Virus record (IMG/VR): IMGVR_UViG_3300028840_001395
Span: 186,001 to 250,000 of that record
Length of the DNA: 64,000 bases
Strand: one strand, 5' to 3'
Made by a program: the position numbers and the translations under genes. Under the pieces are notes generated by a model. It was not told the DNA's origin. It saw only the letters and a program-made list of their open reading frames with translations, and made no database searches. Positions 47,232 through 62,788 of this stretch are shown one piece after another (positions within the stretch are counted from its first letter, which is position 1; every line of letters begins with the position of its first letter).

Positions 47232-48124
47232 ACATCAAGAATCTCCGACCGGGTGTCCGCGTCCGGGTGCAGCACGGCCTCGATCATCGAAAGGCACCCC
47301 CGACCGGACAGTCCTACATCGACGCACGAGAGCCGCACGAGGGGTGCATCGGACTCATTGTCAGCACCTACGATGAAGAGGGCCGTGCTGCCTGGGTGCG
47401 CTTCGATGACGGGGTGGACGCGCCATTCTGGTTTTACGAGCTTGACCATGCCCCTCATTCAGCGCAAGTGTCCGAAGATACTGGATGGGAAGGAAATCCA
47501 CCGGGGAGCTGTCAGAATGACGACCTCCCGAGCGTCACAGAGGGCATGGAGGAAGAAACCATGCCTGAGATTCACATTCACGACTTCGTTCGCCGCCAGA
47601 CCCCCGACAGCCGGTTCTCCCACTGGCTCCTGTCCGACGAGGAGCTTCTCGACCGCATCTACCAGGGCTGGGACAAGCGCCAGCAGGGCTACCGGGATGG
47701 TGTCATCCTCGTGCCTGTGGACCCCGAGGGCTTCTTCACGGGCGTCGTGACGCTCCAGGAGGGTGACAAGCTGCGGGGCTCGTTCGTCCCCCGCCAGAAG
47801 GGTGAAGACCCCCGCAAGCAGACCTCGCTCGACTCCGGCAAGTCCGACGTGGCCAGTCGGAAGCCTCCCGCCGTGGCGGTCGATATCGTGCTCTACCGGG
47901 ACGACGTGCTGGCCGAGGACGGCGACGACACGGGCCACGAGTGGAACATCATCTCGGTCAACGCCAATCCCGTGGAAGGGACTGTGCCCATGTCTCCGGG
48001 CACCCTGATGGCCAACCACTTCCACGACTCGGGCGGCACTCAGACGGACATGAGCGACGAGGAGTTCGTCAAGGCCCTCCGCGAGGCGTACTTCTTCTGG
48101 AAGGACAAGGCCTTCATCGGCTGA
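47228..48124 (+). CDS. DUF3228-like protein (domain from 47561) with in-frame N-terminal SH3/KOW-like domain
   Basis: FVRRQ...SRFSH, GYRDGVILVPV, GEDPRK, VLAED, NHFHDSGGT, FWKDKA; internal GGAGG + ATG at 47561. Confidence 0.65.
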   Translation: MNIKNLRPGVRVRVQHGLDHRKAPPTGQSYIDAREPHEGCIGLIVSTYDEEGRAAWVRFDDGVDAPFWFYELDHAPHSAQVSEDTGWEGNPPGSCQNDDLPSVTEGMEEETMPEIHIHDFVRRQTPDSRFSHWLLSDEELLDRIYQGWDKRQQGYRDGVILVPVDPEGFFTGVVTLQEGDKLRGSFVPRQKGEDPRKQTSLDSGKSDVASRKPPAVAVDIVLYRDDVLAEDGDDTGHEWNIISVNANPVEGTVPMSPGTLMANHFHDSGGTQTDMSDEEFVKALREAYFFWKDKAFIG

Positions 48125-48160
48125 TCATGGGGTATCATAGGTGAACCGAGGAGGTTCACC

Positions 48161-48796
48161 ATGTACGCCGTGTTCGATGGGATCGATGGTTCGGGCAAGG
48201 ACACCCAGCGCGACCTGCTCCGCATCAAGCTCCGCACCCACAAAGACCAGACTTCGCTCTGCCTCAACGAGCCTGACGAGGCCAACCCCATCGGAAGGCT
48301 CATCCGGCAACTCTTGAAGTCCGGAGAACTTCCCGAGAGTCACGCCCCTCTCTTCGTGGCCGACCGCATCGCGCTCCAGACACTGACTATTGGCCCGGCG
48401 CTCAAGGCCGGGGATTCTGTCCTCTGTTCCCGCAGCTTCCTCTCGACCCTGGTGTATCAGCAGGAGAACTGGCCACTCGACTGGCTGTTCGACCTGCACC
48501 GGGAGTTGCCGATCAAGCCCGACTTCGTGTTCATCCTCGACATCGACCCCAAGGAGAGCCTGGAACGCGCCCAGAAGCGTCCGGGTCACATGGAGTACTA
48601 CGAGAAGCTCCCCATCCAAGAGCGGAACCGGGAGAGATACAAGGCTCTGGTGGACGACTCTCGCTTGCAAGACCTCCTGGCACCGGGCGGCAAGGCTGTT
48701 CTCCTTGACGCCAGTGGGTCGAAGTGGCAAGTCCACAAGCGCGTGCTCGAAGCGATGGGGTGGCACGAAGCCGCAGCGGAGATCATCGATGGGTAA
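48161..48796 (+). CDS. tmk: Thymidylate (dTMP) kinase
   Basis: FDGIDGSGKDTQ, LFVADR, SRSFLSTLVYQ, PDFVFILDIDP. Confidence 0.9.
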   Translation: MYAVFDGIDGSGKDTQRDLLRIKLRTHKDQTSLCLNEPDEANPIGRLIRQLLKSGELPESHAPLFVADRIALQTLTIGPALKAGDSVLCSRSFLSTLVYQQENWPLDWLFDLHRELPIKPDFVFILDIDPKESLERAQKRPGHMEYYEKLPIQERNRERYKALVDDSRLQDLLAPGGKAVLLDASGSKWQVHKRVLEAMGWHEAAAEIIDG

Positions 48797-49319
48797 GAAG
48801 AACAAGGCCCGGAACGCCCAGAAGAAACGCCAGAAATCGGCACTCAAGGATGCTCGCCGCCGGGCTGCCCAGAAACCCAAGCCCCAAGGGTCCAAGAAGC
48901 CCACCGTCACCGAAGAGATGTTCCCCGAAGAGGATCTGGTGTTCTGGCTGGCTCACGGTGTCAACTACCTCGTATCCGACTACGAAAACGCGACCTGGAC
49001 GCCGATGTTCGAGGAGATCTACGAGGGGGCCAAGCTCACGCCGGAGGACATCGCCAAGGCCATCGTGGACAAGTTCGGGGAGTCCTACGAGAAGTGGCCT
49101 CCGGAGGGCGAGGCTGCTCTGGCTTGGTCGGTTCAGCCGAGGGAGACCGTCTACATCTACTTCCTGGAGATCCTGCGTCGGCTGCGGGAGAAGAAGTACT
49201 CTCGGGAGCAGTCCGGGAAGCTGGCTGTGAGTCCGCACAACGGCGTCGTCTGGGGGGTGTTCCGCATGGTCGAGAAGGAGATGTCGGAACGCCGGAAGAA
49301 GAGAGAGGGCAAGGCATGA
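48789..49319 (+). CDS. Hypothetical protein with basic N-terminus
   Basis: MGKKNKARNAQKK... Confidence 0.7.
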   Translation: MGKKNKARNAQKKRQKSALKDARRRAAQKPKPQGSKKPTVTEEMFPEEDLVFWLAHGVNYLVSDYENATWTPMFEEIYEGAKLTPEDIAKAIVDKFGESYEKWPPEGEAALAWSVQPRETVYIYFLEILRRLREKKYSREQSGKLAVSPHNGVVWGVFRMVEKEMSERRKKREGKA

Positions 49320-49576
49320 CCGACCGGGACGGTGTGTTGGAGGTGCTGGCCGAGGCGGATGCGCTACTGGTGGATGGCTTCGAGGGTGCCCTCATCGGCT
49401 ACTGCCAGCAGTTCAACAAGACGGTGGCGCTCTACGACTATGACAAGTGCATCAAGATTCTGATGCAGCGGGATGGCATGGACTGGGATAGTGCCGTCGA
49501 GTTCTTCGAGTTCAACACGCTGGGGGCCTACGTGGGGGAGAAGACTCCCGCTTTTGCTACGCTGATCACGGTCTAG
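49316..49576 (+). CDS. Phage hypothetical protein (DGFEGALIG...FNTLGAYVGEKTP type)
   Basis: Pattern recurs in many phage genomes. Confidence 0.75.
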   Translation: MTDRDGVLEVLAEADALLVDGFEGALIGYCQQFNKTVALYDYDKCIKILMQRDGMDWDSAVEFFEFNTLGAYVGEKTPAFATLITV

Positions 49577-49619
49577 CTCGGTTCTCTCCCTATCCGGCTC
49601 CCCCTGTGAGGAGGCTGTG

Positions 49620-49796
49620 ATGGCCAAGCGACGTTGCTGGCTGTGGCATCGATGGCAGGTCGTGGGAGAACGCGGGCCTGACCGCTACGAAGAGTGCAAG
49701 GACTGTGGCCTTCGACGGGTTCGGAAGTTCAAGATGGTCGAGTCACCTATCGACAAGGACTGGCTCTCTGGAAGAAAGGAAACCCTCGATGACTGA
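49620..49796 (+). CDS. Small Zn-binding protein (58 aa)
   Basis: CWLWH...CKDC; GAGGAGG RBS; translated by hand. Confidence 0.6.
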   Translation: MAKRRCWLWHRWQVVGERGPDRYEECKDCGLRRVRKFKMVESPIDKDWLSGRKETLDD

Positions 49797-50352
49797 CAAG
49801 GAAAAGCTCCTCAGCCTCCTGAAGACCCTCTCCTACAAGGAAGGCACCTTCACCCTGAAGTCCGGGCGGGAGTCCGACTTCTACATCGACTGTCGCCTGA
49901 CCTCGTTCCATCCCGAAGGCAGCTTCCTCTGTGGCGTCGAGATGCACGAGATCATCCAGACACACTTCCCCGACGCGGTGGCCGTCGCGGGGGTGCCCAC
50001 CGGGGCCATCCCCCTGGCCACCTCGGTCACCAATCGCAGCTACCAGATCGGCAAGCGTCCGCTGCCCCAGATCGGTATCCGCAAGGATGCCAAGGCCCAC
50101 GGCAATGACCCCGGCTCCCTGCTGATCAACCACAAGCAGTTCGATGAAGGGGCCGAGGTCGTCCTTCTGGAAGACGTGACCACCACGGGCGGTAGCGTCC
50201 TCAAGGCGGCGGCGATTCTGGAAGCGGCAGGCTTCGAGGTCATCGGCATCATCGTCCTGGTAGACCGCCAGGAGGGGTCGCGGGAGACCATCGAGCACGC
50301 GGGCTACGACATGGAGGCCGTGTTCACCCGGAAGGACGTGAAGGGCGAGTGA
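49789..50352 (+). CDS. pyrE: Orotate phosphoribosyltransferase
   Basis: FTLKSGRESDFYIDCR, GVPTGAIP, IRKDAKAHG, VLLEDVTTTGGS (PRPP motif), LVDRQEG. Confidence 0.93.
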   Translation: MTDKEKLLSLLKTLSYKEGTFTLKSGRESDFYIDCRLTSFHPEGSFLCGVEMHEIIQTHFPDAVAVAGVPTGAIPLATSVTNRSYQIGKRPLPQIGIRKDAKAHGNDPGSLLINHKQFDEGAEVVLLEDVTTTGGSVLKAAAILEAAGFEVIGIIVLVDRQEGSRETIEHAGYDMEAVFTRKDVKGE

Positions 50353-51119
50353 CCCTCGTTGAGGCCATCAAGCACGCCGAAGAGATTGGGGCGGGAGACT
50401 GCGCCTGTGCAGCCGAGCACGTCCAACTCGCGGGGTGGCTCCGAGAGCTACGGACGGCACGGGTCAAGCTCGACCTGGCCGATGAGCTGATCGGGGACTT
50501 CTGTGACTACCAGTGCGACCGGGCCGAAGAGAACGGTGGCGACCCGTGCCCCGAGATTCTGGACGACGACGGCGAGCCTATGTTCGAGGATCCAGACGAC
50601 TGGTGCCCCTTCTGCCGGGCGCGGGACTGGGTAGGGACAGAGTGACATGGCACCGCTGATCGAGATCTGGGCGGATTTCAACGCCAAGCTGGAAGATGAG
50701 CGCATCAGCCTGATGACCCGAGGCTCCCAGGCAGCGATCAACGACTACTGGCGTGAGGGGAACGCGGTCGGCAACAAGGTGTTCCTCTGCGACGGCGAGA
50801 TCGGTTGCGTGGCCATCATCGAGGAAGCCGAACCCGGTTACCTGGTGGGTCGGCCCATCACCCCCTACATGGACGTGAACGACTGATGGCACTCGTAGAA
50901 CCCCGCATCATCAAGCTCACAGAGGACGTGCCCGATGCCTTTCGGGGCGAGATCATCCCCATCGACACGGTGGGCGAGATTCTGGTTCGGGAGTGGGTGG
51001 CTGGTCGGCAGGTCTGGTTCGTGGAGTTCGTGGTGGTCACTTCGGTAGGCAGCGAGGTCACGATGCACGCGGACGTGTTCCCCGATCAGGCTGTCTTGTT
51101 CGACCCAGGGGATGATTAG
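50349..51119 (+). other. Three small hypothetical CDSs (50349-50645 Cys-rich, 50647-50886, 50886-51119)
   Basis: Contiguous coupled ORFs. Confidence 0.6.
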
Positions 51120-51274
51120 AGGGTGAAGTCGATCACGGCGATGCCCCGCTCCGGCTCCTCGTCCTCCAGCGCCTCCGGCGGCGGCTCGGGAAGCGGGAGC
51201 TGCAGGGTGGGCTGATTCTCCGCCGGGCGATCCTCCCGGCGGAGCTTGTCCAGTCGGTCTTTCCACCAGGTCAT
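51116..51274 (-). CDS. 52-aa Pro/acidic protein (PTLQLPLP...EEPERGIAVIDF)
   Basis: Own motif promoter and GAGGAGG RBS; resembles small proteins I associate with myxobacteria. Confidence 0.7.
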   Translation of the reverse strand: MTWWKDRLDKLRREDRPAENQPTLQLPLPEPPPEALEDEEPERGIAVIDFTL

Positions 51275-51293
51275 CGAGCACCTCCTCTCATCT

Positions 51294-51322
51294 AGACTAC
51301 TCTGTCGAACCCCGAAGTAAGA
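51294..51322 (-). promoter_or_regulatory. Phage motif promoter copy 17 (back-to-back pair)
   Basis: TCTTAC-N17-TAGTCT. Confidence 0.8.
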
Positions 51323-51327
51323 CGGGG

Positions 51328-51356
51328 GCTTACTCGCGTGCGGAATGGAGTAGTCT
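51328..51356 (+). promoter_or_regulatory. Phage motif promoter copy 18 (back-to-back pair)
   Basis: GCTTAC-N17-TAGTCT. Confidence 0.8.
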
Positions 51357-51373
51357 GGGTGTGGAGGTGCCAC

Positions 51374-52240
51374 ATGCCCAAGTATGGCAACATCCCGACC
51401 CGGCTCAAGGTGTTCCTGCGGGCGGCTATCCAGTTCAAGCGGCCCCACGGGGACGCAGTGCAGTGCTGTCCGGCCTTCGTGACCGACCTGGACAGGCCCA
51501 AGACCCACGACACCGCCCGCCGATGGGCGGGTCGTGCCCAGTACAACCCCTCCTACGCGGTGGTCTACCCGAACACCAAGGTCGAGGGATTGGGGCAGGA
51601 CAACAAGCCCATCCCCAGCGTCACGTTGGTCGGTACGGACGCCCGGCAAGAGGGTGGCTTCGCCTTCAAGGTGGTGACCCCGGAGGGCTGGCTCGTGGAC
51701 CTCCGCAAGGAGGAGTTCTACGAGGTGCTGTTCAAGAAGGGCATCCCCAAGTCCGGCAAGATGGTGGGGCCGTTCCAGTGGGTCGTCAACGGCAGCCAGA
51801 TGCGGCTCACGCTGGTCGGGTCGAGGCTCTACAAGGAGATCGAGGAACTGTCCAAGATCCGCAAGAAGCCTCGGAAGGGCAAGCTCGGGATTCGTGACCT
51901 CGAAGTCGGGGGAGTCTACACGAGCCAGGGTGGCAACAACTACGGATGCGATGCCGTCTTCCTGGGCCGTGCCCGCTTCGACGGCAAGCTCAAGTGCGCC
52001 TGGGTCTACGTCGCCGGGCACTACAGCTCGGTAGCCGGGTATCAGACGGCCTACCAGCGGGCGCTCAAGGAGGGGTGGAATCGGCCCGTTGTGGTCCTGA
52101 CCAGCGGTTGCTCCTACACGGAGTGCGTTGGTAAGGTGGATCTGAAGCCGAACCCGCGTGAGTCTCCGATGACGGAGCACGTCGAGTTCCAGGACGGCTA
52201 CGGGACGAAGCTGTATCGCCCCCGAGTGACGGAGTGGTAG
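51374..52240 (+). CDS. Hypothetical protein (~288 aa)
   Basis: Promoter and GGAGG RBS; FKVVTPEGWLVDLR...F.WV..GSQMRL. Confidence 0.75.
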   Translation: MPKYGNIPTRLKVFLRAAIQFKRPHGDAVQCCPAFVTDLDRPKTHDTARRWAGRAQYNPSYAVVYPNTKVEGLGQDNKPIPSVTLVGTDARQEGGFAFKVVTPEGWLVDLRKEEFYEVLFKKGIPKSGKMVGPFQWVVNGSQMRLTLVGSRLYKEIEELSKIRKKPRKGKLGIRDLEVGGVYTSQGGNNYGCDAVFLGRARFDGKLKCAWVYVAGHYSSVAGYQTAYQRALKEGWNRPVVVLTSGCSYTECVGKVDLKPNPRESPMTEHVEFQDGYGTKLYRPRVTEW

Positions 52241-52242
52241 AG

Positions 52243-52713
52243 ATGGACATCAAATCCAAGGGCAAGTACCCGTCGAACGCACTGTCGAACTTCGCCCCGC
52301 ATCCGTTCTACCTGGACGGCATCCTGTGCAACTCGATGGAGGGGTTCCTCCAGTCGCTCAAGTTCGACAAGCCGCACATCCAGGCTGAAGTCTGCAAGCT
52401 GACGGGTCTGGCGGCGAAGAAGCGTGGGTCGAAGCGCACCAAGACCTGGCAGAAGGTACAGAGGCTCTGGTGGCAGGGACAGATCTACGACCGGCACGGA
52501 GAGAGCTACCAGCGGCTGCTCGACCGGGCCTACGCTGCTTTGGCCAAGAACGAGAAGTTCAAGAAGGCCCTCCTCGCCACGGGTGACGCCGTGCTGACCC
52601 ACAGCATCGGGCACTCCAACGCCCGTCAGACTATCCTGACCGAGCGGGAGTTCGTCCGGCGGCTCATGGCAATGCGGAAGGTTCTCCAGTGGAAGGAGGA
52701 GGCCGAGGGATGA
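52243..52713 (+). CDS. NADAR-family protein (T4 gp30.3/YbiA-like ADP-ribosylhydrolase fold)
   Basis: ALSNFAPHPFYLDG...SMEGFLQSLK, LWWQG, NEKFKKALLATG, ILTEREF. Confidence 0.82.
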   Translation: MDIKSKGKYPSNALSNFAPHPFYLDGILCNSMEGFLQSLKFDKPHIQAEVCKLTGLAAKKRGSKRTKTWQKVQRLWWQGQIYDRHGESYQRLLDRAYAALAKNEKFKKALLATGDAVLTHSIGHSNARQTILTEREFVRRLMAMRKVLQWKEEAEG

Positions 52714-53003
52714 AGCCCGCACGCATCAAGTTCCTGACCGCCGAGGAGGGTGGCCGGAAGGCTCCCCCACAACACGACAGGCCCTTCAACTACCGGACTC
52801 ACGCGGGGCCGACAACCGACCACAACGACGCCTCGTGGACGCTCGTAGTCGAGTTCGAGAAGAATCCAGGGGCCGGGCAGTGGGAGGACTGCACGGTCAA
52901 CTACCTGGCCTACAACCATCCCAAGTGCCCGCCGCTGACGCCGGGCACCGAGCTTTTCTTGTTCGAGGGCTACAGGATCGTGGCGCTCGTCAAGGTGGCC
53001 TGA
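52710..53003 (+). CDS. Stand-alone EF-Tu domain III-like protein
   Basis: FLTAEEGGRKAP...YR...LTPGTELFLFEGYRIVA matches the EF-Tu C-terminal pattern LSKDEGGRHTP...FAIREGGRTVG. Confidence 0.6.
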   Translation: MKPARIKFLTAEEGGRKAPPQHDRPFNYRTHAGPTTDHNDASWTLVVEFEKNPGAGQWEDCTVNYLAYNHPKCPPLTPGTELFLFEGYRIVALVKVA

Positions 53004-53485
53004 TGCGCCAGAAGCTCATCTTCCTCGACATCGACGGGGTGCTGAACAACTCCGGCTGGTGGGAGAAGCTCTACGCCGATCAGTCACAGAGTCCCTATCT
53101 GTTCGACCCCCAGAACGTCACGTCCCTCAACATGATCCTCGACCAGACCGGAGCGAACATCGTGATCTCGTCGGCCTGGCGGCACGGCAAGAAGCTCAAC
53201 TGGCTCAAGAAACACCTGCGGAAGCAAGGCGTCCGAGGTCACGTCCTCGGTGTCACACCCGATGGCTGGAACATCAAGAGCTTCCCCGAAAACTGGGTTC
53301 GGGGTCACGAGATCGAACTCTGGCTCAAGAGGCATACGGACGGGAAGGCCGTGTTCGTCATTCTGGATGACGACGATGACATGGGGCCGCTGATGGACCG
53401 GCTCGTCCAGACGGATATGAAGTACGGGCTGACGCCGGAACTGGCGGCGAAAGCGACCCGGATGCTCAAGGGGGTGACCTGGTGA
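53003..53485 (+). CDS. HAD phosphatase, Swiss-Army-Knife RNA-repair type (HAD_SAK_2)
   Basis: IFLDIDGVL, IVISSAWR, RGHEIELWL, FVILDD, VQTD..YGLT. Confidence 0.85.
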   Translation: MRQKLIFLDIDGVLNNSGWWEKLYADQSQSPYLFDPQNVTSLNMILDQTGANIVISSAWRHGKKLNWLKKHLRKQGVRGHVLGVTPDGWNIKSFPENWVRGHEIELWLKRHTDGKAVFVILDDDDDMGPLMDRLVQTDMKYGLTPELAAKATRMLKGVTW

Positions 53486-53922
53486 GCGAACCCACGACCT
53501 CGGAAGAGATGCGGGTCAAGCTGGTCGAGCTATATCAGGCGATGTACAGCTTGACGGAGCCGGAGTGTGCCTGCGAGTGCAAGATTCCCCGCTCCTGCTG
53601 CTCTCCCGAGTACTGCGAGATGACCATCTCCCATGCGAAGGAGAGGTGGGGTGTCGAGTTGGTGAGGACGGCCCACGCCCGGCTGCCCTTGATGGGGGAC
53701 AAGGGTTGCGTGGCTGCCCCGCACTTGCGACCGATGTGTACCTTGCACACTTGCACGATCAACTCCCTCGGTTTCAAGCCCAACGACCCCGAGTGGAACG
53801 ACAAGTACTTCGACCTGCGGGGTCAGATCGATGCCCTGGAGTACAATCTGACGTGCGAACTGGAGCGCGTCAAGTCCGAAGATTCTGGGCCTCGTCCGGA
53901 TACTTCTTCAGCAGCGCCCTGA
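53482..53922 (+). CDS. Cys-rich hypothetical protein
   Basis: CACECK..SCCSPEYC...C..APHLRPMCTLHTC. Confidence 0.7.
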   Translation: MSEPTTSEEMRVKLVELYQAMYSLTEPECACECKIPRSCCSPEYCEMTISHAKERWGVELVRTAHARLPLMGDKGCVAAPHLRPMCTLHTCTINSLGFKPNDPEWNDKYFDLRGQIDALEYNLTCELERVKSEDSGPRPDTSSAAP

Positions 53923-54340
53923 GCTGTTCCCGCTCCCGCCGCTCCCGCTGCTCCGCCAGTCGCTTCGCCACCCGCTGACGCTCCCGCTCTTCCCGCTCCT
54001 TCTTCTCCTTGGCTTCGGCACGGGCCTTGGTCTCCCACTCGTCGCTCCACAGATCCTCGATGTCGAAGGTCTCGGTGTAGTAGTCATAGTCACCGCAGCG
54101 CCCGTACTCCTTCCACTCGATGGTGATCCAGCCATCCTCGTCGTGGAAGTCGAGGCTGCCGTCCTCATCATCGTCGGCCAGGTTCGAGATGTTGATGTAG
54201 CCGTGGTCGTAGTCCGGGTCGAACTCGCTCCGCAGGTCCACGTAGTCCTGGATCATGTCGGTCAGTTCCCAGGTCGCCTCGTCCTTCTCGCGGGACTCCT
54301 TGAGGGCCTGGAGCACTTCCTGCTTGGTTGCGATAGCCAT
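53870..54340 (-). CDS. Acidic coiled-coil hypothetical protein
   Basis: MAIATKQEV...; TGATG coupling. Confidence 0.7.
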   Translation of the reverse strand: MAIATKQEVLQALKESREKDEATWELTDMIQDYVDLRSEFDPDYDHGYINISNLADDDEDGSLDFHDEDGWITIEWKEYGRCGDYDYYTETFDIEDLWSDEWETKARAEAKEKKEREERERQRVAKRLAEQRERREREQLRALLKKYPDEAQNLRT

Positions 54341-54570
54341 CACTTCACCCCCGCCTTCTGCATGTTGCCCTCGGAGGTGATCACGAGCATCTTCTTCGGA
54401 ATCAAGGCCTCGAACACCCCGCGCTTGCTTTTGAAGCTCAGGCAGTGGGAGGCCCGTTCCTCGGTGATCGGCTGGCCCCCCTTGTCCTTCTCGCAGTAGC
54501 AGAGGGAGCCTTCCTTCCACCAGCACTTCCAGCAGCACACCGGGAGGCCCTTGTAGGTCGAGATAGCCAT
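54340..54570 (-). CDS. Small Cys-rich hypothetical protein
   Basis: MAISTYKG..CCWKC...CYC...C. Confidence 0.65.
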   Translation of the reverse strand: MAISTYKGLPVCCWKCWWKEGSLCYCEKDKGGQPITEERASHCLSFKSKRGVFEALIPKKMLVITSEGNMQKAGVK

Positions 54571-55256
54571 CACGCCACCTCCGACTTCAGCTTCGTCTCG
54601 GCCTCGCGGAGCGCGACCTCCGCAGCCTTGACCTCGGCCTCGGCCCGCTCCAGGGCGGACTCGCACCGCTGGAGGTTGTCCTGCTCCCGCTTGACGGCGG
54701 ACTCCTTGTACTGCAGCGTGCTCTTGGCGTTCAACGCCCGGCGGCGAGCGGTCATCAACTCGTTCTTGGCCTTGGTCAGCCGGGCTGCCTCCTCGAAGGC
54801 AGCCCCCACCTTGGTCGCGGACACGTCCCCGGCGTCGAACCAGAGCTTGATGGCGGACAGCACCATGTCCTTGCTCGGGCCACCGTAGTAGAAGGCGTAC
54901 TCCGCGATCAGCTTCGGGTCGGGCTTGTTGTCCTCGCGGCACTTGCTCTCCATCTGCTTGTAGGTGCGGCCCCGCAGGTAGCCGTAGGCCAGCAGCCGGT
55001 GGCGGCGCTGACGGCCTCCCTGCTGCCCGTGGTCGCGCCAGACGCTCTCCTGCTTCCACAGCTCGTTGAGCTTCCGCTTGTGGTTGCCCTTGTCCTTGAA
55101 GCCCTTGTCACCCCGCTCCCACAGGTCGTGGTACTGCTGCTTGGCCTTGGCGGAGCCACGGCGGGCCAGGGTGGTCACAGCGGCACTGTACTTGATCTGG
55201 GCCTTGAGGCGGGCCACCCAGTTCCAGTATGCGGTCTTGTCGGTCTTGGTATCCAT
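54570..55256 (-). CDS. Hypothetical protein (RHRLLAYGYLRGRTY motif, C-terminal coiled coil)
   Basis: CAGGAGG RBS; motif recurs in phage proteins. Confidence 0.75.
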   Translation of the reverse strand: MDTKTDKTAYWNWVARLKAQIKYSAAVTTLARRGSAKAKQQYHDLWERGDKGFKDKGNHKRKLNELWKQESVWRDHGQQGGRQRRHRLLAYGYLRGRTYKQMESKCREDNKPDPKLIAEYAFYYGGPSKDMVLSAIKLWFDAGDVSATKVGAAFEEAARLTKAKNELMTARRRALNAKSTLQYKESAVKREQDNLQRCESALERAEAEVKAAEVALREAETKLKSEVA

Positions 55257-55385
55257 CTCACGTTCCTCCTGAAACACGAATAGCGTTAGTCCTTCGAGGG
55301 AACCAACGCTACTAGGAGGACCGCGAGCCTATGGCGGGTGTCGGCCCTACGTGAAGCTGGTGTAGTAGTTCTTCATCACGCCCCC

Positions 55386-55414
55386 ATAGTAGGGGCCTTC
55401 TGGCCCCGTGTCAA
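55386..55414 (-). promoter_or_regulatory. Host sigma70-type promoter
   Basis: TTGACA-N17-TACTAT, near-consensus. Confidence 0.75.
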
Positions 55415-55929
55415 GATCCTTCTCCGCCTTCCATGACCGCCAGCATCGACCGGAACGTCGCCCCATCGTCCGTGGGGCCAGGAACGAGAACCTCTTTCCA
55501 GTTCGAGCCTATCTGCTTGATGACCCCCAACCGGAACTTGATGATGGCCTTGGCCTCGACCTGGCGGATGCGCTCACGGGTCAGGTTGAACAGCTCACCC
55601 ACCTTCTCCAAGGTGAGGCCATCTGGATTCCTCTCGGCCACGTCGAGGACACAGCTCTCCCCTCCGATGTGCTCTCCCGCTTCGACCTCGGGGAAGTTCG
55701 GCATGATGGAGCCAGCGTGGCTCACGTCGAGGTAGAGGTTGTACTTGCAGGTGACGTAGGGACAGGGCCGAACCCCGTGCCTGCAATGCGCCCGGAGACG
55801 GGGGAGATGACGGGGTGTCCTCGGCCCCTGGAGAGGTTCTTCGTTGTTGACCGGGATGGTCTTCTTGAACTTGCGTTTCGGGTTCATCTCGGGATCGATC
55901 TGAAGTGCTGTGGCTCCTTCTTCCATCAC
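55411..55929 (-). CDS. Stand-alone sigma-70 region 4 HTH protein with Cys-containing N-terminal domain
   Basis: LTLEKVGELFNLTRERIRQVEAKAI (sigma region 4.2); RPCPYVTCKYNLYLDV...CVLDVAE; no sigma region 2. Confidence 0.85.
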   Translation of the reverse strand: MMEEGATALQIDPEMNPKRKFKKTIPVNNEEPLQGPRTPRHLPRLRAHCRHGVRPCPYVTCKYNLYLDVSHAGSIMPNFPEVEAGEHIGGESCVLDVAERNPDGLTLEKVGELFNLTRERIRQVEAKAIIKFRLGVIKQIGSNWKEVLVPGPTDDGATFRSMLAVMEGGEGS

Positions 55930-55942
55930 TTCCTCACGTTCA

Positions 55943-56033
55943 TGGTCGCTCCGACAGGAATCGAACCTGCGATGCGGGTGTCACCCCGAGCGGATTTAGA
56001 GTCCGCCTCCTTCGACCACTCGGACACGGAGCG
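55943..56033 (-). tRNA. Amber-suppressor tRNA (anticodon CUA), class II, encoded CCA
   Basis: CGCTCCG/CGGAGCG acceptor + A73 + CCA; D arm TCC-GAGTGGTCGAA-GGA; GCGGA-CTCTAAA-TCCGC; 19-nt variable arm; GCAGG-TTCGATT-CCTGT. Confidence 0.9.
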
Positions 56034-56043
56034 ATTGAAGTGT

Positions 56044-56258
56044 GGCGCGTGACAGGAGTCGAACCTGCATAACCCTCCCCACAAGGGGGAAGGCAAAGAA
56101 GAGGCCAGGCCTGGTCAAGAGAGGGGCCTGCGACATCCACGCCGAGCGGGCCTAGCAGGCCCGTGTCCCGACTCATCCCATCTGCATGGCGATCCACCAT
56201 GCGTGCCCTTCTTCTCCCCCGGTTAAAGCGGGGGGCCTCACCGTTGGGCTACACGCGC
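56044..56258 (-). tRNA. Ochre-anticodon (UUA) tRNA-Gln-like RNA with 148-nt insertion in the variable region
   Basis: GCGCGTG/CACGCGC acceptor; GCC-CAACGGTGA-GGC D arm; CCCCG-CTTTAAC-CGGGG anticodon arm; GCAGG-TTCGACT-CCTGT T arm; no canonical encoded CCA (C73-ACA). Confidence 0.65.
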
Positions 56259-56268
56259 ACTGTCCTCT

Positions 56269-56297
56269 ATACTACTCTCTAAGGCGGGAGGATAAGC
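56269..56297 (-). promoter_or_regulatory. Phage motif promoter copy 19 (TAGTAT variant, tRNA operon)
   Basis: GCTTAT-N17-TAGTAT, 10 nt upstream of the first tRNA base. Confidence 0.8.
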
Positions 56298-56779
56298 CCA
56301 GGAGCATCGAAGTGGGCCATCCCCCCATCCCACCAGCCTACCCGAGCCTTGAACGCAGGATAGCCCTTTCTTATGTCCATGTCACCCGATTTCTTGCGGA
56401 TCAGGTCATTCGCGTAGGCCGGAACCACCCCCGTGGCCGTCGAGACTGTGACGTGGGGAGTCCGGCCCGCTACAGTCCGGAACTTCGTGGGAGGTTTCAC
56501 AATGAGCACCTGGGCCTTCTCATCCGAGACCTCCCCGACCACCTTGACCGCGACCGACTTGCCCCACGGGAGACTGTGGGGCCTTGTCTCTTCGCCGTCC
56601 TTGAAGTGCCAGATGGTCATGTGGTGAGCGAGTCTGACAGGGAAGCTCGGGGGAAAGGCCCGAAGGAGTCGTTGGCGGTCTTGGGAGGCGATGAACAGGG
56701 CGATGTAGATCACGCCATCGTCGGGGTGTCCAGCAACACGTCGCAGCCACCTGGCCGCGACTCGGTTGGCTGCTATCAC
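56279..56779 (-). CDS. 2H phosphoesterase (cyclic phosphodiesterase, tRNA-ligase CPD-like)
   Basis: Two Hx(T/S) motifs: AHHMTI and PHVTVST. Confidence 0.75.
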   Translation of the reverse strand: MIAANRVAARWLRRVAGHPDDGVIYIALFIASQDRQRLLRAFPPSFPVRLAHHMTIWHFKDGEETRPHSLPWGKSVAVKVVGEVSDEKAQVLIVKPPTKFRTVAGRTPHVTVSTATGVVPAYANDLIRKKSGDMDIRKGYPAFKARVGWWDGGMAHFDAPGLILPP

Positions 56780-57198
56780 GTAGTACCCGGCGGAGTGGGG
56801 ATCACCGAGGTTTCAAGCCAGTATCTCTTGACATCCTTCAGAAGGTTCTCCAGGTCACCATAGTTGATCGGCTTGACCACGTAGGAGTTCGCCCCATCGT
56901 AGAAAGACTGGAAGATGTCCGCCTCCAGCTTCGAGGTCGTCATCACGATCACCGGGATGTGGCGCAAGCTCGGATCATTCCGGATTTCCCGGAGGGCTTC
57001 CTGGCCGTCCATCAAGGGCATCTGCAAGTCGAGCATGACCACATCGGGTAACTTGCCCGACCGGAGACGCTCCAAGAGCTTCTGACCGTTCTCGACCCGC
57101 TCGACTTGAAGCGAGCAGTCGCAGTCCTTCATCGCTTCCTGAATGAGAACCCAGTCCTCACGATCATCTTCGGCAAAAAGAACCAGCGGGTCACTCAT
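56776..57198 (-). CDS. Single-domain response regulator (Rcp1/CheY-like)
   Basis: LFAEDD, PDVVMLDLQMPLMDG, IPVIVMTTS, GANSYVVKP. Confidence 0.93.
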   Translation of the reverse strand: MSDPLVLFAEDDREDWVLIQEAMKDCDCSLQVERVENGQKLLERLRSGKLPDVVMLDLQMPLMDGQEALREIRNDPSLRHIPVIVMTTSKLEADIFQSFYDGANSYVVKPINYGDLENLLKDVKRYWLETSVIPTPPGTT

Positions 57199-58288
57199 TG
57201 TGGGACTCCGGGGTCAAAGGGATTCTGATAATGAACGCAGCGCCGACGCCAGGTTCACCGCGAGCTTCGATGGTCGCCCCATACTGCTCAAGCAGACGAC
57301 GACAGAGGGCCAAACCAATACCCGTACCGGGATAGTCAAAGCGGGTGTGCAGCCTCGTGAACACCTCGAAGATCTTGTCCGCGTGCCCCTGGTCGAAACC
57401 AATGCCATTGTCCTGAACCACCACCACCGCGTCGTCTCCCTCGACGGTGCCGTGAATCTTGATCACCAAGGGGCGTTCGGGGTGGCGGAACTTGAGTGCA
57501 TTGGACAGGAGATTGGCGAACACCTGCCGAATCTGCATCGTATGGGCATGGACGGTCGGAAGTTCCCCCACCACGACCTCGGCGTTCGCCTCCTGCACCC
57601 TCAACTCAAGGTCTTGCAGGGCTTCCCGCAGCACACGACCCAGATCGACCACCATGAGAGGTACGTCGGTGTATCCAGCCCGTGCGTAGCTCAGCAGGTT
57701 ATCGATGAGATGGGACATCCGTTCTGTGGCCGAGAGCATCACCTGGAGATATTCGGCCCCGCGTTGGTCTATCTGGTCACTATACTTCTCTGTGAGGATC
57801 TTCCCGAACCCCTTGATCTTGTTCAAAGGTTCCCGGAGGTCGTGAGAGGCAGCATAGGCGAAGCTCTGGAGGGCTCGGTTGGAGGACTCAAGTTGCTTGG
57901 TGCGCTCCTGAACAGCATCTTCGAGCTTCTTCTGGGCCTTCTTCTGCTCGGACACATCCCTGATCACAACGATCACCTCGTTGTCTCCCGAGGCAGAGAA
58001 GCGGGCCTCGAACACACAGTCGGGGAACTCGTCCAGGGTGTATTCCCAGAGCAGGACTTCGCCGGTCTCCAAAGCTCCGAGGATGTAGTGCATCGCCTGT
58101 TCAGTGAACTCGGCGTCAAAGATCTCACCGACGGTCCGACCCACATACTCACTCGGAGAGACAAGCGACGGAACCTTCCCGACATGGGTGTCGAGGAATC
58201 GACCTTCTCGATTGAGCAGGTGGAGCATGTCCGGAGTTGCCCGAACGAATGCTCGGTAACGAGCCTCAATCGTGGTCAAGTGATCCAT
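57191..58288 (-). CDS. PAS-domain sensor histidine kinase (HisKA + HATPase_c)
   Basis: N-terminal PAS; ASHDLREPL (H box); NLLSNALKF; DNGIG; GTGIGLALC. Confidence 0.93.
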   Translation of the reverse strand: MDHLTTIEARYRAFVRATPDMLHLLNREGRFLDTHVGKVPSLVSPSEYVGRTVGEIFDAEFTEQAMHYILGALETGEVLLWEYTLDEFPDCVFEARFSASGDNEVIVVIRDVSEQKKAQKKLEDAVQERTKQLESSNRALQSFAYAASHDLREPLNKIKGFGKILTEKYSDQIDQRGAEYLQVMLSATERMSHLIDNLLSYARAGYTDVPLMVVDLGRVLREALQDLELRVQEANAEVVVGELPTVHAHTMQIRQVFANLLSNALKFRHPERPLVIKIHGTVEGDDAVVVVQDNGIGFDQGHADKIFEVFTRLHTRFDYPGTGIGLALCRRLLEQYGATIEARGEPGVGAAFIIRIPLTPESHNE

Positions 58289-59073
58289 CCCGACCCCGAC
58301 GCACTCACCATGCTCTTGAGGTCTTTCAAGTCCTTGAGCTTGTCCACGTTGAGTGCATCGAGCAGGAGTACGAACAGAACAGCGACGAGCACCAAGCACA
58401 GGAACATGACGATGGCGGCGACGGGATGGGCACCAATCCACTCAAGTGCCCACTTCCAGGCAGACTTGTTGGCGTTCTTGACCTCCTCCAGAATCGCATC
58501 GTGCTGGGTCTTGTCCTCCTCGGCCCGACGCTTCATCCCCTGGGAGAAGTCACGTCGAAGCTCTGACATCTCCTGAGAGGTCTTGGTCTGGGCCTGGACG
58601 GACTCTCGGGTCAACCCCACAAGCTGCTCGATGAGAACTCCGACACCGGGCGCACCGTCACCATTCTGGCGGCGCTTCTCCTGCACCCCGATGGCATAGA
58701 GGCAAGTGCGCTCCAGCAGGTCGCCCCCAAAGGTGCCCTTCTCCAGATACTCGACAGCCCCGATGTCCATTGCCTGAAGCTGAAGGTTCCGGTCTCCATG
58801 ACTGGTCACGATGATGACAGGAGTATGGAAGTGCAGCTCGTGGAGCTTGCGGAGAAACGTGATGCCGTCACTGTCCGGCAGCTTGTAGTCGAGGAGGACT
58901 ACATCGTAGCGGTGATGCGTCTGCTGGAGTTGGTAGAAGCCTTCCTGTGCCGTGTGCGCGTCGTCAACGACGAACTTCGCTCGGCTGGCGTCCTCTAGCA
59001 GATCCCGGATGAGACGGCAATCGTCCTGATCGTCATCAATCACCAAGACCCGGACGGTCAAAGGAGAAGGCAT
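58276..59073 (-). CDS. Response regulator receiver fused to a coiled coil and C-terminal TM helix
   Basis: LVIDDDQDD, VLLDYKLPDSDG, IIVTSHG, YLEKG; then coiled coil and VAAIVMFLCLVLVAVLFVLLL. Confidence 0.85.
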   Translation of the reverse strand: MPSPLTVRVLVIDDDQDDCRLIRDLLEDASRAKFVVDDAHTAQEGFYQLQQTHHRYDVVLLDYKLPDSDGITFLRKLHELHFHTPVIIVTSHGDRNLQLQAMDIGAVEYLEKGTFGGDLLERTCLYAIGVQEKRRQNGDGAPGVGVLIEQLVGLTRESVQAQTKTSQEMSELRRDFSQGMKRRAEEDKTQHDAILEEVKNANKSAWKWALEWIGAHPVAAIVMFLCLVLVAVLFVLLLDALNVDKLKDLKDLKSMVSASGSGWIT

Positions 59074-59095
59074 CTAAGTCCACCCCGCACCCCTG

Positions 59096-60133
59096 TCAGG
59101 AGCAGTAGGAAAGCTGCTTGGTCAGGTAGCGGTTGAGGTTCGTGAGCGCCCGGAACAGCGTGCGACTGTCGTCCACCGTCGCATGAATGGCCTTTTCGAG
59201 ATAGTTGTCGATCTTCCGGGCCATCGTGCTGTCCTGGCGAGCGACCTTGGCAAGCAAGACCGAAGCCCGGTCAAGGGCAGTCTGGATGGCCTCCGCATCC
59301 GGCTCATAGCCGCCCTTGATGAGATCCATCGCCGTGCTGATCTCGACCTGAAGCTGCTTCAGGCCAGGGATGCACACGGTCACGCTCTGGGTGCCCCAGC
59401 CGAAGCCCACGTCGCGGGCCAGACCCACCGGGTACTCGCCCTGGGGCAGCTTCTTGCCGTCCACCGGGGAGACATGGTTGCGACCGAAGGCGTCCACGTA
59501 GCCGTGGCTCACGCGCTTGGCGTAGTGCTTCTGAAGCTCACGCTTGGCCATGTTGAGGTCAGGGAACCAGAATCGCTGGTCGGTATCGAACTTGGCCCCG
59601 TCGATGCGACCCGTTGCGCCGGAGTCCGTCATCGCGCCCCAGCGCCGGATGACCTTGAAGCCACCCTCGTCCGGGACGACCATGCCCTCGTAGAACTTCG
59701 ACTTGTTCTTCGCGGCATCGATCAGGTAGACCATGAAAGCCTCACCCGCCTTGACCTTGTTCCGGTTCAGGCCCTCCCGTTGCAGGATCGGCTTGTGGGC
59801 CACCTTGCGGAGCAGGGCATACTTCTCCATGCAGGTCAGGCCCGCCCACTTCTGGACGGTCATGCCCTGCTTCTGGTAGCAGAAGCACGCGATCTTCGCG
59901 GCCTCGACGGCTTCGAGGCGCATCTCATGGGCCTGCTTGAGCAGTGGGATGAGGTGCTGCCGGGTCTCCGGGTTATCGGAGGCGCACTTCTGCATCTCAG
60001 CCAGCAGACCCGACTCCTGGGCCTCGCTCAGCTCCACGAACTCATCCTGGTCGAACACGTCCAGGTAGGGCTGATCGGGGGTCATCGTCTGGTGCTTCTT
60101 CTTGGCACCGATTTCCTGGGGGTCAAAGTCCAT
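59096..60133 (-). CDS. WGR-domain protein (non-catalytic)
   Basis: KNKSKFYEGMVV...KVIRRWGA...KRVSHGY in the centre; helical flanks. Confidence 0.65.
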   Translation of the reverse strand: MDFDPQEIGAKKKHQTMTPDQPYLDVFDQDEFVELSEAQESGLLAEMQKCASDNPETRQHLIPLLKQAHEMRLEAVEAAKIACFCYQKQGMTVQKWAGLTCMEKYALLRKVAHKPILQREGLNRNKVKAGEAFMVYLIDAAKNKSKFYEGMVVPDEGGFKVIRRWGAMTDSGATGRIDGAKFDTDQRFWFPDLNMAKRELQKHYAKRVSHGYVDAFGRNHVSPVDGKKLPQGEYPVGLARDVGFGWGTQSVTVCIPGLKQLQVEISTAMDLIKGGYEPDAEAIQTALDRASVLLAKVARQDSTMARKIDNYLEKAIHATVDDSRTLFRALTNLNRYLTKQLSYCS

Positions 60134-60195
60134 CACATCCTCCCGCAAGGGTATTCGTCTCCACCCCTACGGAAATATCAAAGCCCTACCGAGAA

Positions 60196-60699
60196 TCAGA
60201 TGGTGAGGAAGTCGAAATCGTCCTCGTCTTCGTCGTCTTCCCCGAGGAGGTTCTCCACGGTCTCCTTGGACTTCGGCGGCAGCTTGTCATTGAGATACGC
60301 CTCAAGCTCGGCCAGGTCGAACTCGTCATCCTCTGTCTCTTCCGGCAGACCGGGTGTGGATACGGTCGAGAAGCCGCACATCTGGGTGATGGCGGCGGAG
60401 ATGCCGAGGAGGTGCTTCTTGAGTTCTTGCAGCACCACCCGGAGAGCAATGGGGTCGCAGAAGTCCTCCTTGTGCATCCACAGAAGGCAGTTCCCGTGTG
60501 TGTCCGTCTTGGCCTTCATGTAGGCGGCAATGCCCTTGCCACGAGCACTCCCTCGCTGGACATTGGTTAAGACCGCGATTTCAATGATAATCTCACCGAT
60601 CTCGATGGTGTCTATCCAGCCGGTCTTGAACTCCTCACGGGATACCACGGCTCCGGGGAAGAACTCCTGCATCTCGGTATCGAAGGTTCGTCTATCCAT
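60196..60699 (-). CDS. Hypothetical protein with acidic tail
   Basis: MDRRTFDTE...; AGGAG RBS. Confidence 0.7.
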   Translation of the reverse strand: MDRRTFDTEMQEFFPGAVVSREEFKTGWIDTIEIGEIIIEIAVLTNVQRGSARGKGIAAYMKAKTDTHGNCLLWMHKEDFCDPIALRVVLQELKKHLLGISAAITQMCGFSTVSTPGLPEETEDDEFDLAELEAYLNDKLPPKSKETVENLLGEDDEDEDDFDFLTI

Positions 60700-60775
60700 G
60701 CTCCTACTACCCTTTTTCTGGCAAGGGGGCTCCCCCTCCGTCCGATAGGGTATCAGAGGGGAAGGAGGTGCAAGC

Positions 60776-61564
60776 ATGAGCACCGCAGCAGTCGATACGA
60801 ACACTGGCGACGTGAAGATGGCCTCCGTTCTCTCCGAGATCGGTGACCTCGATCAGGGCACCCTCGTATCCGCCCGGCTCAAGAAGAAGGGCGTGCAGCG
60901 GGGCCAGGCAGGCTCCAAGGTCGTGTACGATGACGACTTCGTTCACGTCCTGATCTGGAGTGGCTTCCACTACCAGGCGCTGGTCGAGCGTTCCTTCAAG
61001 AAACTCCACCAGTTGTGGGGCAAGGGCGACCTGGCCACCAAGCTCATCGAGGCGACCCGCAACAAGGGTCAGCTCGGGGTCACCGTGGGCGACGTGACCA
61101 CGGCCATCCAGGAGGTCGAGGACGCCCTCCTCAAGGTCATCCGGTCCGGCCAGAAAACCGAGTCCATCTACGCCGAAGAGATTGAGCAGCCCATCTCGGT
61201 CTGGACCCCGCTGGAGGTGGGCGGCAAGCGCATCCGGGGAGCCAAGGTCTATGACGGGGCGGGTGACCCGAACAACCCGCGTGCGCCCAAGCCGGGCACC
61301 GTGTACATCGACGGCGTGAAGCTCGGGGAGAAGATTCTGACCCCCGCGCCGAACGGTTCCTGGAAGCCCAAGCAGAAGGCCAAGACGGTCGCCAAGGACA
61401 TCCTGCGGTCGTGGCTGCCCATCGGGCTGTACGTCCGCTACGCGCTGGAGAAGGAGCGGCTGCTCGACGTGAAGGTCGGGGATGAGGCCGGTCAGTTCGC
61501 CAAGTCCGAAGGCGTGCCGGTGGATCCGATGGCGGTCAAGTCGCTGTTCAAGATCGCCCCCTAG
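60776..61564 (+). CDS. Hypothetical protein (262 aa)
   Basis: AAGGAGG RBS; strong codon bias. Confidence 0.8.
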   Translation: MSTAAVDTNTGDVKMASVLSEIGDLDQGTLVSARLKKKGVQRGQAGSKVVYDDDFVHVLIWSGFHYQALVERSFKKLHQLWGKGDLATKLIEATRNKGQLGVTVGDVTTAIQEVEDALLKVIRSGQKTESIYAEEIEQPISVWTPLEVGGKRIRGAKVYDGAGDPNNPRAPKPGTVYIDGVKLGEKILTPAPNGSWKPKQKAKTVAKDILRSWLPIGLYVRYALEKERLLDVKVGDEAGQFAKSEGVPVDPMAVKSLFKIAP

Positions 61565-62334
61565 CTGTCGGGGTCGTCGGGATCTTCGACCTCGATGAAC
61601 GTGCCCCCGTCGTAGGCGTCGTTCAGCGTCACCTCATCGACAATCTTGTCCATGTCGATCTCCGACACCAGACGCTCGCTCTCCTCGCGCCAGAGCTTCT
61701 CCTTGGCGTCAGCGTGACAGGGAGGACTCACGGCCAGCCACACGTCATCCTGCTCGCAGATGTGCTTGGCCTCCTTGAGTGACTCGGCGGGAGCCAGGGG
61801 CAGGTTGTTGTTGCAGTCGTCATCGAACACGCGCCAGCAGAGGATCGCTTCCTCCCCCTCGACCACGAGATGCGTGATGATGGTCTCGAAGTCCTTATCC
61901 TCTCCGGGAACGATGTAGATCATCCGGTGGTAGTGCAGGTTGGCGTCGATGCCTTCCAGCACCCCCGGAGGGATGGTCATCCAGCCCCGGTCGAGAGGGA
62001 TCTGTCCGTTCATGCAGCCCTCGATCTCTTCCAGCGCCTTTGCCCGCTTGGCTTCCTGGCGCTCGACGCCTTCGGCCACATACTCCAGTAGCGTCTTGCC
62101 CCGTAGACGGGCGACGATGAACATGACCACGAACAAGGGCCAGCGAATGAACGCTCCGAGAGCCTTCATCAAGGGGATACCCCCCTCGGACTCGCCCAAG
62201 ACCTTACGGAGCCAGTCACGGAAGCTCGCGCCCCTCGATTGGACGAGGGCGACCTCGAACAAGATCACTGTGGGCAGCGCGAAGGTGCCCACGAAGAGAT
62301 ACCCGAGTGAGATATTGAGGAAGGTGTCCATCAT
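61561..62334 (-). CDS. Membrane protein with soluble C-terminal domain
   Basis: Two N-terminal hydrophobic helices. Confidence 0.7.
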   Translation of the reverse strand: MMDTFLNISLGYLFVGTFALPTVILFEVALVQSRGASFRDWLRKVLGESEGGIPLMKALGAFIRWPLFVVMFIVARLRGKTLLEYVAEGVERQEAKRAKALEEIEGCMNGQIPLDRGWMTIPPGVLEGIDANLHYHRMIYIVPGEDKDFETIITHLVVEGEEAILCWRVFDDDCNNNLPLAPAESLKEAKHICEQDDVWLAVSPPCHADAKEKLWREESERLVSEIDMDKIVDEVTLNDAYDGGTFIEVEDPDDPDS

Positions 62335-62762
62335 TCCTCCGCACTTTGGCGGCGGCGCATCACCAGGAGGGCGTCACGCTTCTTGTTGATGCTCTCGATG
62401 GCCTGTTGCATCTTCGTCCAGACCGAGGCGTTGTCCGAGTGAATCCGGATCTCGTCCGGTATCACGTCCAGGTTCTCGTGGACGGCGATCTGCTCCTCCA
62501 ACCACGTCAACACGTCGTAGCCCGTGCGGCCTTCGGGGTCTGGTGTCCCGAACCCGTAGCAGCCACCCAGGTCGTGATCGAGCGAGAGGATGCCGACCTC
62601 GCCGGTCTCCAGCATGGCGATGGTGTCGGCCACAGACCGAACCACGAGCCAGGTCGTCGGTGAATCCTTGATGTACTCGGGCGGATGCTCGACCCACACG
62701 CCCTTGTCGTCCGGCACACCCCGGATGTCGTCCAGGTAGACGTTGACCTTGTTGTCACCCAT
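62331..62762 (-). CDS. Cyclic-phosphate-processing receiver domain protein (RNA-repair associated)
   Basis: VYLDDIR, W.VVRS, LSLDHDLG, TGYDVLTW, IRIHSDN. Confidence 0.8.
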   Translation of the reverse strand: MGDNKVNVYLDDIRGVPDDKGVWVEHPPEYIKDSPTTWLVVRSVADTIAMLETGEVGILSLDHDLGGCYGFGTPDPEGRTGYDVLTWLEEQIAVHENLDVIPDEIRIHSDNASVWTKMQQAIESINKKRDALLVMRRRQSAEE

Positions 62763-62788
62763 AACGCTCAACCCTCCCTGGCTCTATT

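Follow-up and report, generated by a model that had tools for sequence, protein, structure and literature searches.

Large RNAs built on or around a tRNA are few, and the locus described here is best introduced by comparison with each of them in turn. Class II tRNAs (Leu, Ser, Tyr, Sec) carry an extra helix between the anticodon and T arms on an otherwise canonical cloverleaf, and their variable regions reach about 21-23 nt. In tmRNA a tRNA-like acceptor and T arm is joined to a large structured RNA domain, but the anticodon arm is lacking and a tag reading frame and pseudoknots are present. The bacterial Y RNA-like YrlA, the Ro60 partner, combines a tRNA-like module with a protein-binding module and is encoded next to RNA-repair genes, and jumbo phages are known to carry this kind of system (PMC7824862). 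In YrlA the 5' and 3' ends form the Ro-binding stem and the tRNA-like part is internal. GOLLD and ROOL are ornate phage RNAs of 600-800 nt and of unknown function, found next to tRNA genes, and GOLLD sometimes has a tRNA embedded in its linker (10.1101/2024.12.08.627333). Finally, tRNA genes can be interrupted by a structured RNA: bacterial group I introns sit in the anticodon loop, are about 200 nt or longer and have a P3-P9 core, while archaeal introns need a bulge-helix-bulge motif and EndA.

Here we describe an otherwise normal-looking tRNA of a huge phage with a conserved, folded RNA domain of about 120 nt and unknown function in its variable loop, which appears to be a new kind of tRNA-fused non-coding RNA. 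As in class II tRNAs the extra structure emerges between the anticodon and T arms, and a second hairpin followed by a conserved AU before the T stem looks like a class II arm, but the variable region is 148 nt long and has two arms, one of them a three-way-junction domain with an invariant loop. Like tmRNA, which some phages also encode, it joins tRNA elements to a large structured domain, but its anticodon arm is intact and no tag was found. Compared with YrlA the topology is reversed, and compared with GOLLD and ROOL, which contain or flank tRNAs, it is the domain that sits inside the tRNA.

A tRNA with a 148-nt variable region

The window, that is the whole 64-kb stretch of DNA that was analysed, is part of the 435.8-kb phage contig IMGVR_UViG_3300028840_001395. 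The sequence-only reading had reported a tRNA scaffold with a structured insert in its variable loop, and this observation is confirmed: the feature lies on the minus strand, at the coordinates originally given, as a complete tRNA of 215 nt read 56258->56044. Its parts and immediate neighbours are as follows.

56279..56779 (-), upstream gene, predicted 2H phosphoesterase of the CNPase / tRNA-ligase CPD type
56267..56277 (-), phage promoter-like motif GAGTAGTATAG, ending 8 nt upstream of tRNA position 1
56044..56258 (-), whole chimeric RNA, tRNA body plus 148-nt variable region (56216-56069)
56252..56258 (-), acceptor stem 5' strand GCGCGUG, paired with 56045-56051 (CACGCGC); discriminator C at 56044, no encoded CCA (ACA follows the discriminator)
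56235..56249 (-), D arm, preceded by U8, with a GCC/GGC stem and a GG-containing loop
56217..56233 (-), anticodon arm CCCCG-CUUUAAC-CGGGG, with U33 and A37; anticodon UUA at 56224-56226
56096..56213 (-), inserted domain (extra arm 1), a three-way junction: P1, 56207-56213 with 56096-56102; P2 hairpin, 56184-56202; conserved joiner AGAUGGGA, 56173-56183; P3, 56166-56172 with 56114-56120; P4, 56155-56162 with 56124-56131
56131..56155 (-), invariant 25-nt apical hairpin module CUAGGCCCGC-UCG-GCGUGGAUGUCG
56072..56093 (-), extra arm 2, an 8-bp hairpin just before the T arm (class II-like variable arm)
56052..56068 (-), T arm GCAGG-UUCGACU-CCUGU, preceded by an invariant AU (A15-U48-type partner)
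55943..56033 (-), neighbouring class II tRNA with anticodon CUA, 10 nt downstream, with encoded CCA
55411..55929 (-), downstream gene, small sigma-70 region-4-like protein, probably co-transcribed

The minimum-free-energy fold reproduces the cloverleaf with the insert as a separate domain (-109.7 kcal/mol, z = -3.2, 1 of 200 shuffles as good). Standard tRNA finders miss such a gene: neither ARAGORN nor Rfam at gathering threshold calls the feature, and an Rfam E-value scan of a 651-nt region also missed it. Only on the isolated 231-nt stretch does the Rfam tRNA model (RF00005) align end to end, with all 148 nt as a variable-region insertion, at 28.2 bits against a gathering score of 29 (E = 3.6e-4). 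The cloverleaf criteria for a tRNA (7-bp acceptor, D arm, 5-bp anticodon stem with a 7-nt loop containing U33 and R37, T arm with a UUCRA loop) are satisfied, while the variable region far exceeds the 4-5 nt of class I or the roughly 21 nt of class II tRNAs.

BLAST of the 401-nt region against GenBank phages found no match, and scans of IMG/VR with a 34-mer, with a degenerate 5' half and for relatives of both flanking proteins returned only this phage, the locus retrieved by exact pattern being 100% identical to window 47926-62550. Homologues of the two flanking proteins in a large protein collection, however, led to short metagenomic phage contigs (denoted L with a number) with the same gene order: response regulator, 2H phosphoesterase-like gene, RNA genes, then the small sigma-70 region-4-like gene. 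Five further distinct copies of the interrupted tRNA sit at the same locus, in L004:3542-3758, L069:1773-1989, L005:2036-2268, L006:582-826 and L026:1682-1901 (minus strand); L073 is the same phage as L026, with 3016 nt shared at 99.9% identity. All keep both the tRNA body and the insert, and the whole RNA is 215-245 nt across the copies, which puts the variable region at about 148-178 nt. The Rfam tRNA model scores L004, L005 and L006 at 38.4-43.9 bits, above gathering, again with the insert in the variable region.

Conservation and covariation of the inserted domain

RNAalifold on the six distinct sequences gives the four tRNA arms plus P1 (7 bp) closing the insert, a P2 hairpin of variable length, a conserved joiner AAGAUGGGAC, P3 (7 bp), a CAC/CUC internal loop, P4 (8 bp), the apical 25-nt element and a separate hairpin just before the T arm. 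On this structure 95.5% of cells are standard pairs and 17 of 68 pairs show compensatory changes. No shuffle out of 500 reaches either figure, and sliding the 3' partners by 1-3 columns gives only 45-53% pairing and 3-7 compensated pairs. Six sequences, two of them close to each other, make a small alignment, and the shuffle control does not correct for relatedness, though the slid controls do. Compensated pairs occur in the acceptor stem (two pairs in L026), in the D and anticodon stems, in P1, P2, P3 and P4 (2-3 pairs in each of four helices of the domain) and in the last hairpin, where sequence and length vary but pairing is kept, with 3 compensated pairs. The anticodon stem is nonetheless recorded as invariant in the arm-by-arm comparison of the copies. 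A covariance model of the domain (R1) scores 116-151 bits on homologues. Lack of covariation in homologues had been named beforehand as an outcome that would count against the feature, and this was not what the alignment showed.

The sequence-only reading had proposed a long-range helix (GAAGAAGG/CCUCUUCUU, here P1), a GCAUGG/CCAUGC hairpin and a final hairpin, all of which are supported by compensatory changes. One detail is not supported: the proposed local hairpin CGGGCCU/AGGCCCG has no compensatory change and three mismatched cells, whereas the competing long-range helix GGGCCUGC/GCAGGCCC (P4) has two compensated pairs. The local hairpin is therefore rejected as the conserved structure, although it may be an alternative conformer. 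The 5' strand of P4 (GGGCCUG) can pair either with the P4 3' strand or with AGGCCC inside the invariant hairpin (56155-56172 / 56131-56155, minus strand), a possible two-state switch specific to the tRNA-embedded copies.

Identity to the window copy is 79-91% in the tRNA parts, 81-97% in P3-P4-apical, 33-72% in P1, P2 and the last hairpin, and 67-83% in the DNA of the 2H and sigma-like genes. Both the tRNA body and the core of the insert are therefore under purifying selection. This disfavours a decaying tRNA gene disrupted by a selfish insertion without function of its own, a reading for which it can be said that the element is lost in L075 and truncated in mid-insert in L064, and that mobile insertions do occur in the window, where a homing-endonuclease-type ORF splits a ligase gene. 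Against it, both the tRNA body and the insert core are more conserved than the neighbouring protein genes, the 17 compensated pairs include pairs in the tRNA stems, and there is neither a second copy of the insert in the window nor any flanking direct repeat, so that we consider this reading very unlikely. A MITE or terminal-inverted-repeat element is rejected because of the missing second copy and the absence of a target-site duplication. An overlapping protein-coding explanation is also rejected, since the overlapping ORFs (56186-56863 on the plus strand, 55940-56200 on the minus strand) do not appear in the high-GC3 lists and the homologues differ in length by amounts that are not multiples of three.

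The apical element, CUAGGCCCGC-N(2-5)-GCGUGGAUGUCG, is invariant in all six copies and recurs in other non-coding RNAs of this phage group. A pattern scan of IMG/VR found a second copy in the same phage, 1.7 kb beyond the window's end (L007), and a metagenome scan found further copies, while the window itself holds no second one. With a covariance model of the hairpin (R2) eleven instances score 42-71 bits, and their closing helices have unrelated sequences. The contexts differ. In L007 (same contig as the window) and L028 the module lies inside a conserved non-coding region of about 600 nt (L007:130-730, about 1.1-1.7 kb past the window end), behind a GAGTAGTCTAG motif and with no Rfam match, which may be a large structured phage RNA. 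In L006:839-1000 (L006b) it is inside a second tRNA-like RNA, between the interrupted tRNA and tRNA(CUA), with an acceptor stem (GGGGUGG/CCACCCC), a T arm and a D-like hairpin but no anticodon arm. In L029 it lies in the leader between the 2H gene and an uninterrupted tRNA(UUA), in L012 just upstream of a six-tRNA array, and in L019 there is no tRNA nearby. A scan of genome contigs with the hairpin pattern gave 20 hits, and all of these hits in cellular genomes look like chance matches in coding DNA. In L059:4600-5125 about 500 nt of non-coding sequence after an uninterrupted tRNA(UUA) end in a T-arm-like GUGCGGUUCGAUUCCGCA and may be another tRNA-like RNA, but models R1 and R2 give no hit there.

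No known intron, ribozyme, tmRNA, Y RNA or ornate-RNA family matches the feature. Rfam scans at E<=10 over 55800-56450 or 56036-56266 list no Intron_gpI, no Y RNA, no tmRNA and no known self-cleaving ribozyme (hammerhead, twister, pistol, hatchet, HDV-like, hairpin), and there are no GOLLD or ROOL hits in the window or in L004-L007. Nor do the position of the insertion, in the variable region rather than the anticodon loop, and its size of 120-148 nt fit a group I intron. An archaeal-type intron would need a bulge-helix-bulge (two 3-nt bulges around a 4-bp helix) at the exon-intron junctions, but these flank a continuous 7-bp P1 with 1-5 unconserved linker nucleotides, and the gene content is of the bacterial-phage type. 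ARAGORN finds no tmRNA and no tag reading frame in the window, and no tmRNA in the related loci scanned; L006b is closer to tmRNA topology but also lacks a tag call. For a Y RNA, there is no conserved Ro-site sequence, as the candidate helix P3 covaries rather than keeping a consensus, and no TROVE protein is found among roughly 50 window ORFs scanned against Pfam or PHROGs, which cover only this part of the 436-kb genome.

Genomic context and decoding capacity

The motif GAGTAGT(A/C)TAG occurs 23 times in the window against 3.4 expected, mostly 5-20 nt before ORF starts (for example at 14093-14103 (+), 16783-16793 (+), 44432-44442 (+) and 56267-56277 (-)), and is probably this phage's own promoter. 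The copy ending 8 nt upstream of tRNA position 1 is conserved upstream of every homologue. No terminator-like site separates the RNA genes from the sigma-like gene (Pfam Sigma70_r4), which is syntenic in relatives, and the likely unit is therefore promoter, interrupted tRNA, tRNA(CUA), sigma-like gene. The tRNA(CUA) is called by ARAGORN and by Rfam at 55 bits and has an unusual C1-G72 first pair, A73 and an encoded CCA. A tRNA(CUA) follows in every relative checked, in the class II form in L004, L005, L006, L069 and L075 and in a class I form in L064 and L073.

The protein encoded upstream has two conserved HxT motifs. Pfam tRNA_lig_CPD is weak in the window protein (17.9 bits, E = 0.0023, below the 23-bit cut-off) and above the cut-off in three homologues. 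A profile search of the family against PDB sequences gave nothing significant, but in a fold search the AlphaFold2 model (pLDDT 81) matches the CNPase catalytic domain at TM about 0.58, placing the protein as a predicted 2H cyclic phosphodiesterase of the RNA-end-healing type. The linkage to this gene is frequent but not strict: L026/L073 and L069 keep the RNA with only a remnant of the gene, L075 lacks both the gene and the interrupted tRNA but keeps tRNA(CUA), and more distant 2H homologues (L065, L066, L068) have no RNA gene downstream. Directly upstream of the 2H gene the phage encodes a histidine kinase (PAS-HisKA-HATPase) and two response-regulator receiver proteins (56776-57198, 57191-58441, 58276-59073, minus strand), syntenic in relatives. 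The window also encodes a set of NAD/ADP-ribose and RNA-repair-type genes (16813-18489 (+), 59096-60148 (-), 62331-62783 (-), 52162-52713 (+), 49621-50352 (+)), comprising a PARP catalytic domain, WGR, a cREC cyclic-phosphate-processing receiver, gp30.3/NADAR and a phosphoribosyltransferase. A NAD-dependent DNA ligase is split into an adenylation+OB ORF and an HhH+BRCT ORF with an HNH-like endonuclease ORF between them (12115-13299, 13271-14098, 14104-14946, plus strand), which looks like a homing-endonuclease insertion. This is the kind of NAD/ADP-ribose and RNA-repair gene set described for jumbo phages (PMC7824862). Elsewhere in the window, a 1328-aa protein (34547-38533, minus strand) combines glycosyltransferase family 2, a GT1-like domain and methyltransferase domains, next to two nucleotide-sugar epimerase genes (29851-31877).

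Such a setting could suit a counter-defence tRNA, in which the hypertrophied variable region would shield the tRNA from host nucleases that cut tRNA variable or anticodon loops, or would act as a bait for them, with the neighbouring 2H enzyme repairing cut ends. Host nucleases that cut tRNA variable loops are known (PMC13096335), the locus lies in an island of RNA-repair and NAD/ADP-ribose conflict genes and the neighbouring tRNA(CUA) is class II. However, a bait should resemble the host target, and no host is known; an invariant complex domain is not needed for mere resistance, and the module also occurs outside tRNAs. The nuclease-decoy role, also suggested by the sequence-only reading, remains plausible background, but in our opinion it is an unlikely main explanation.

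The anticodon loop is CUUUAAC (UUA) in the window, L004, L006 and L026, but CUUGUAA (UGU, a canonical Thr-type loop) in L005 and L069, a coordinated three-base difference that yields another canonical loop with A38. In the window the 52 best GC3-supported ORFs end in TGA (32), TAG (16) and TAA (4), and apparent in-frame TAGs lie mostly in the promoter-like motif, whose two TAGs create false in-frame stop signals, or at gene boundaries. Wholesale stop-codon recoding is therefore rejected for this window, which covers only 15% of the genome, and the RNA does not fit a suppressor tRNA of a stop-codon-recoded phage there. A working decoder with the domain in place, either an aminoacylated tRNA or a tmRNA-like molecule entering the ribosome at UAA or ACA codons, has in its favour that all tRNA identity and tertiary-interaction positions are conserved (U8, A14, GG in the D loop, U33, R37, T-loop, A15-U48) and that class II tRNAs tolerate an arm at this site. 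Against this, no tmRNA features are detected, there is no sign of recoding in the window, the anticodon is not conserved, and the size of the domain makes a steric clash likely, although the latter is an inference. We regard this possibility as very unlikely.

Possible roles of the inserted domain

Of the three options offered without preference by the sequence-only reading, the tRNA-fused functional RNA is supported in its general form, its specific tmRNA-analogous version that enters the ribosome at stop codons is not supported, and the non-canonical intron or processing substrate is not excluded, so that its interpretation is partly supported. Two readings survive, which the present data do not separate, and our preference for the first is tentative. 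In this reading the RNA is a stable, tRNA-scaffolded molecule whose working part is the hairpin module. What the analysis establishes is that the cloverleaf and the helices of the domain are both kept by selection across six diverged copies, that the domain core (P3-P4 capped by the invariant hairpin) is as conserved as the tRNA body, that the same module is reused in unrelated RNA contexts of the same phage group, and that the gene has its own promoter-like motif and sits among RNA-end-healing and NAD/ADP-ribose genes. The mechanism, in contrast, is inferred from sequence alone: the RNA would be made and kept as one molecule, with the tRNA part supplying folding, RNase P and 3'-end processing, CCA addition and stability, and possibly recognition by tRNA-binding enzymes, while the protruding domain would present the invariant hairpin as a binding site for a phage or host protein or RNA, no such partner being identified. 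The tRNA would then be the scaffold and address label of the module, with a role in the tRNA-centred conflict between phage and host rather than in ordinary decoding.

The main alternative, which we consider possible but more doubtful, is an intervening sequence that is cut out after transcription by protein enzymes, the halves then being healed and sealed (2H cyclic phosphodiesterase, kinase, RNA ligase) or simply staying paired as a split tRNA. The product would be a working tRNA(UUA) or tRNA(UGU), the conserved hairpin would be the recognition site for the processing enzyme, and removal could time suppressor activity. The anticodon arm is kept in fully canonical form (U33, purine 37, invariant stem) and its anticodon is switched in a coordinated way, suggesting that it is read by something, which a pure scaffold would not require. 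Non-orthologous but uninterrupted tRNA(UUA) genes sit right after the same 2H gene in more distant relatives (L059, L029), so a working UUA tRNA may be what is selected at this locus. Also against the scaffold reading, the loss in L075 and truncation in L064 show that the interrupted element is dispensable. A domain of about 120 nt on the variable region is also hard to reconcile with passage through the ribosome (an inference). The gene immediately upstream is of the CNPase/Trl1-CPD type, the end-healing step of tRNA splicing and repair; an RNA ligase gene sits two genes upstream of the 2H gene in relative L062, and the cREC gene is nearby in the window. Introns predicted in jumbo-phage tRNAs are reported in the literature (PMC13037316), and the module upstream of tRNAs in L029 and L012 would also fit a processing signal.

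On the other hand, the nucleotides at both ends of the insert are not conserved while its interior is, which is what a functional appendage predicts and the reverse of what a spliced-out spacer predicts. There is no group I core, bulge-helix-bulge motif or known ribozyme, no endonuclease was identified, and the 2H gene is missing or degraded in L026/L073 and L069, which still keep the RNA. In L006b, removing the domain would leave no anticodon arm, so this RNA cannot be a decoding tRNA interrupted by an intron, and the module is found in other non-intron contexts as well. An intron at this position is not known in bacteria or phages. More speculatively, and in our view improbably, the domain could be a built-in regulator of the tRNA that carries it. 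The invariant hairpin, which displays a UAG triplet, and the stacked P1-P3-P4 arm might fold back on, or capture in trans, a stop-codon-reading anticodon, keeping the suppressor tRNA masked until a phage factor releases or excises the domain; or the domain might be removed by a previously unknown bacterial or phage protein-dependent tRNA splicing pathway that uses the adjacent CNPase/Trl1-type 2H enzyme. Either would be a new way of controlling or maturing a tRNA outside archaea and eukaryotes.

tRNA-fused non-coding RNAs such as tmRNA and YrlA, and tRNAs embedded in GOLLD, have each been informative about translation or RNA repair. The RNA described here has the reverse arrangement, a full tRNA that hosts a conserved folded domain at the one site where extra arms are tolerated, and its invariant hairpin defines a small unannotated family of phage RNA modules that recur around tRNA genes of huge phages. 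If the domain is retained, it marks an unknown partner in the tRNA-centred phage-host conflict; if it is excised, it would be the first protein-dependent tRNA intron known in a bacterial virus, and a possible timer for suppressor tRNA activity.
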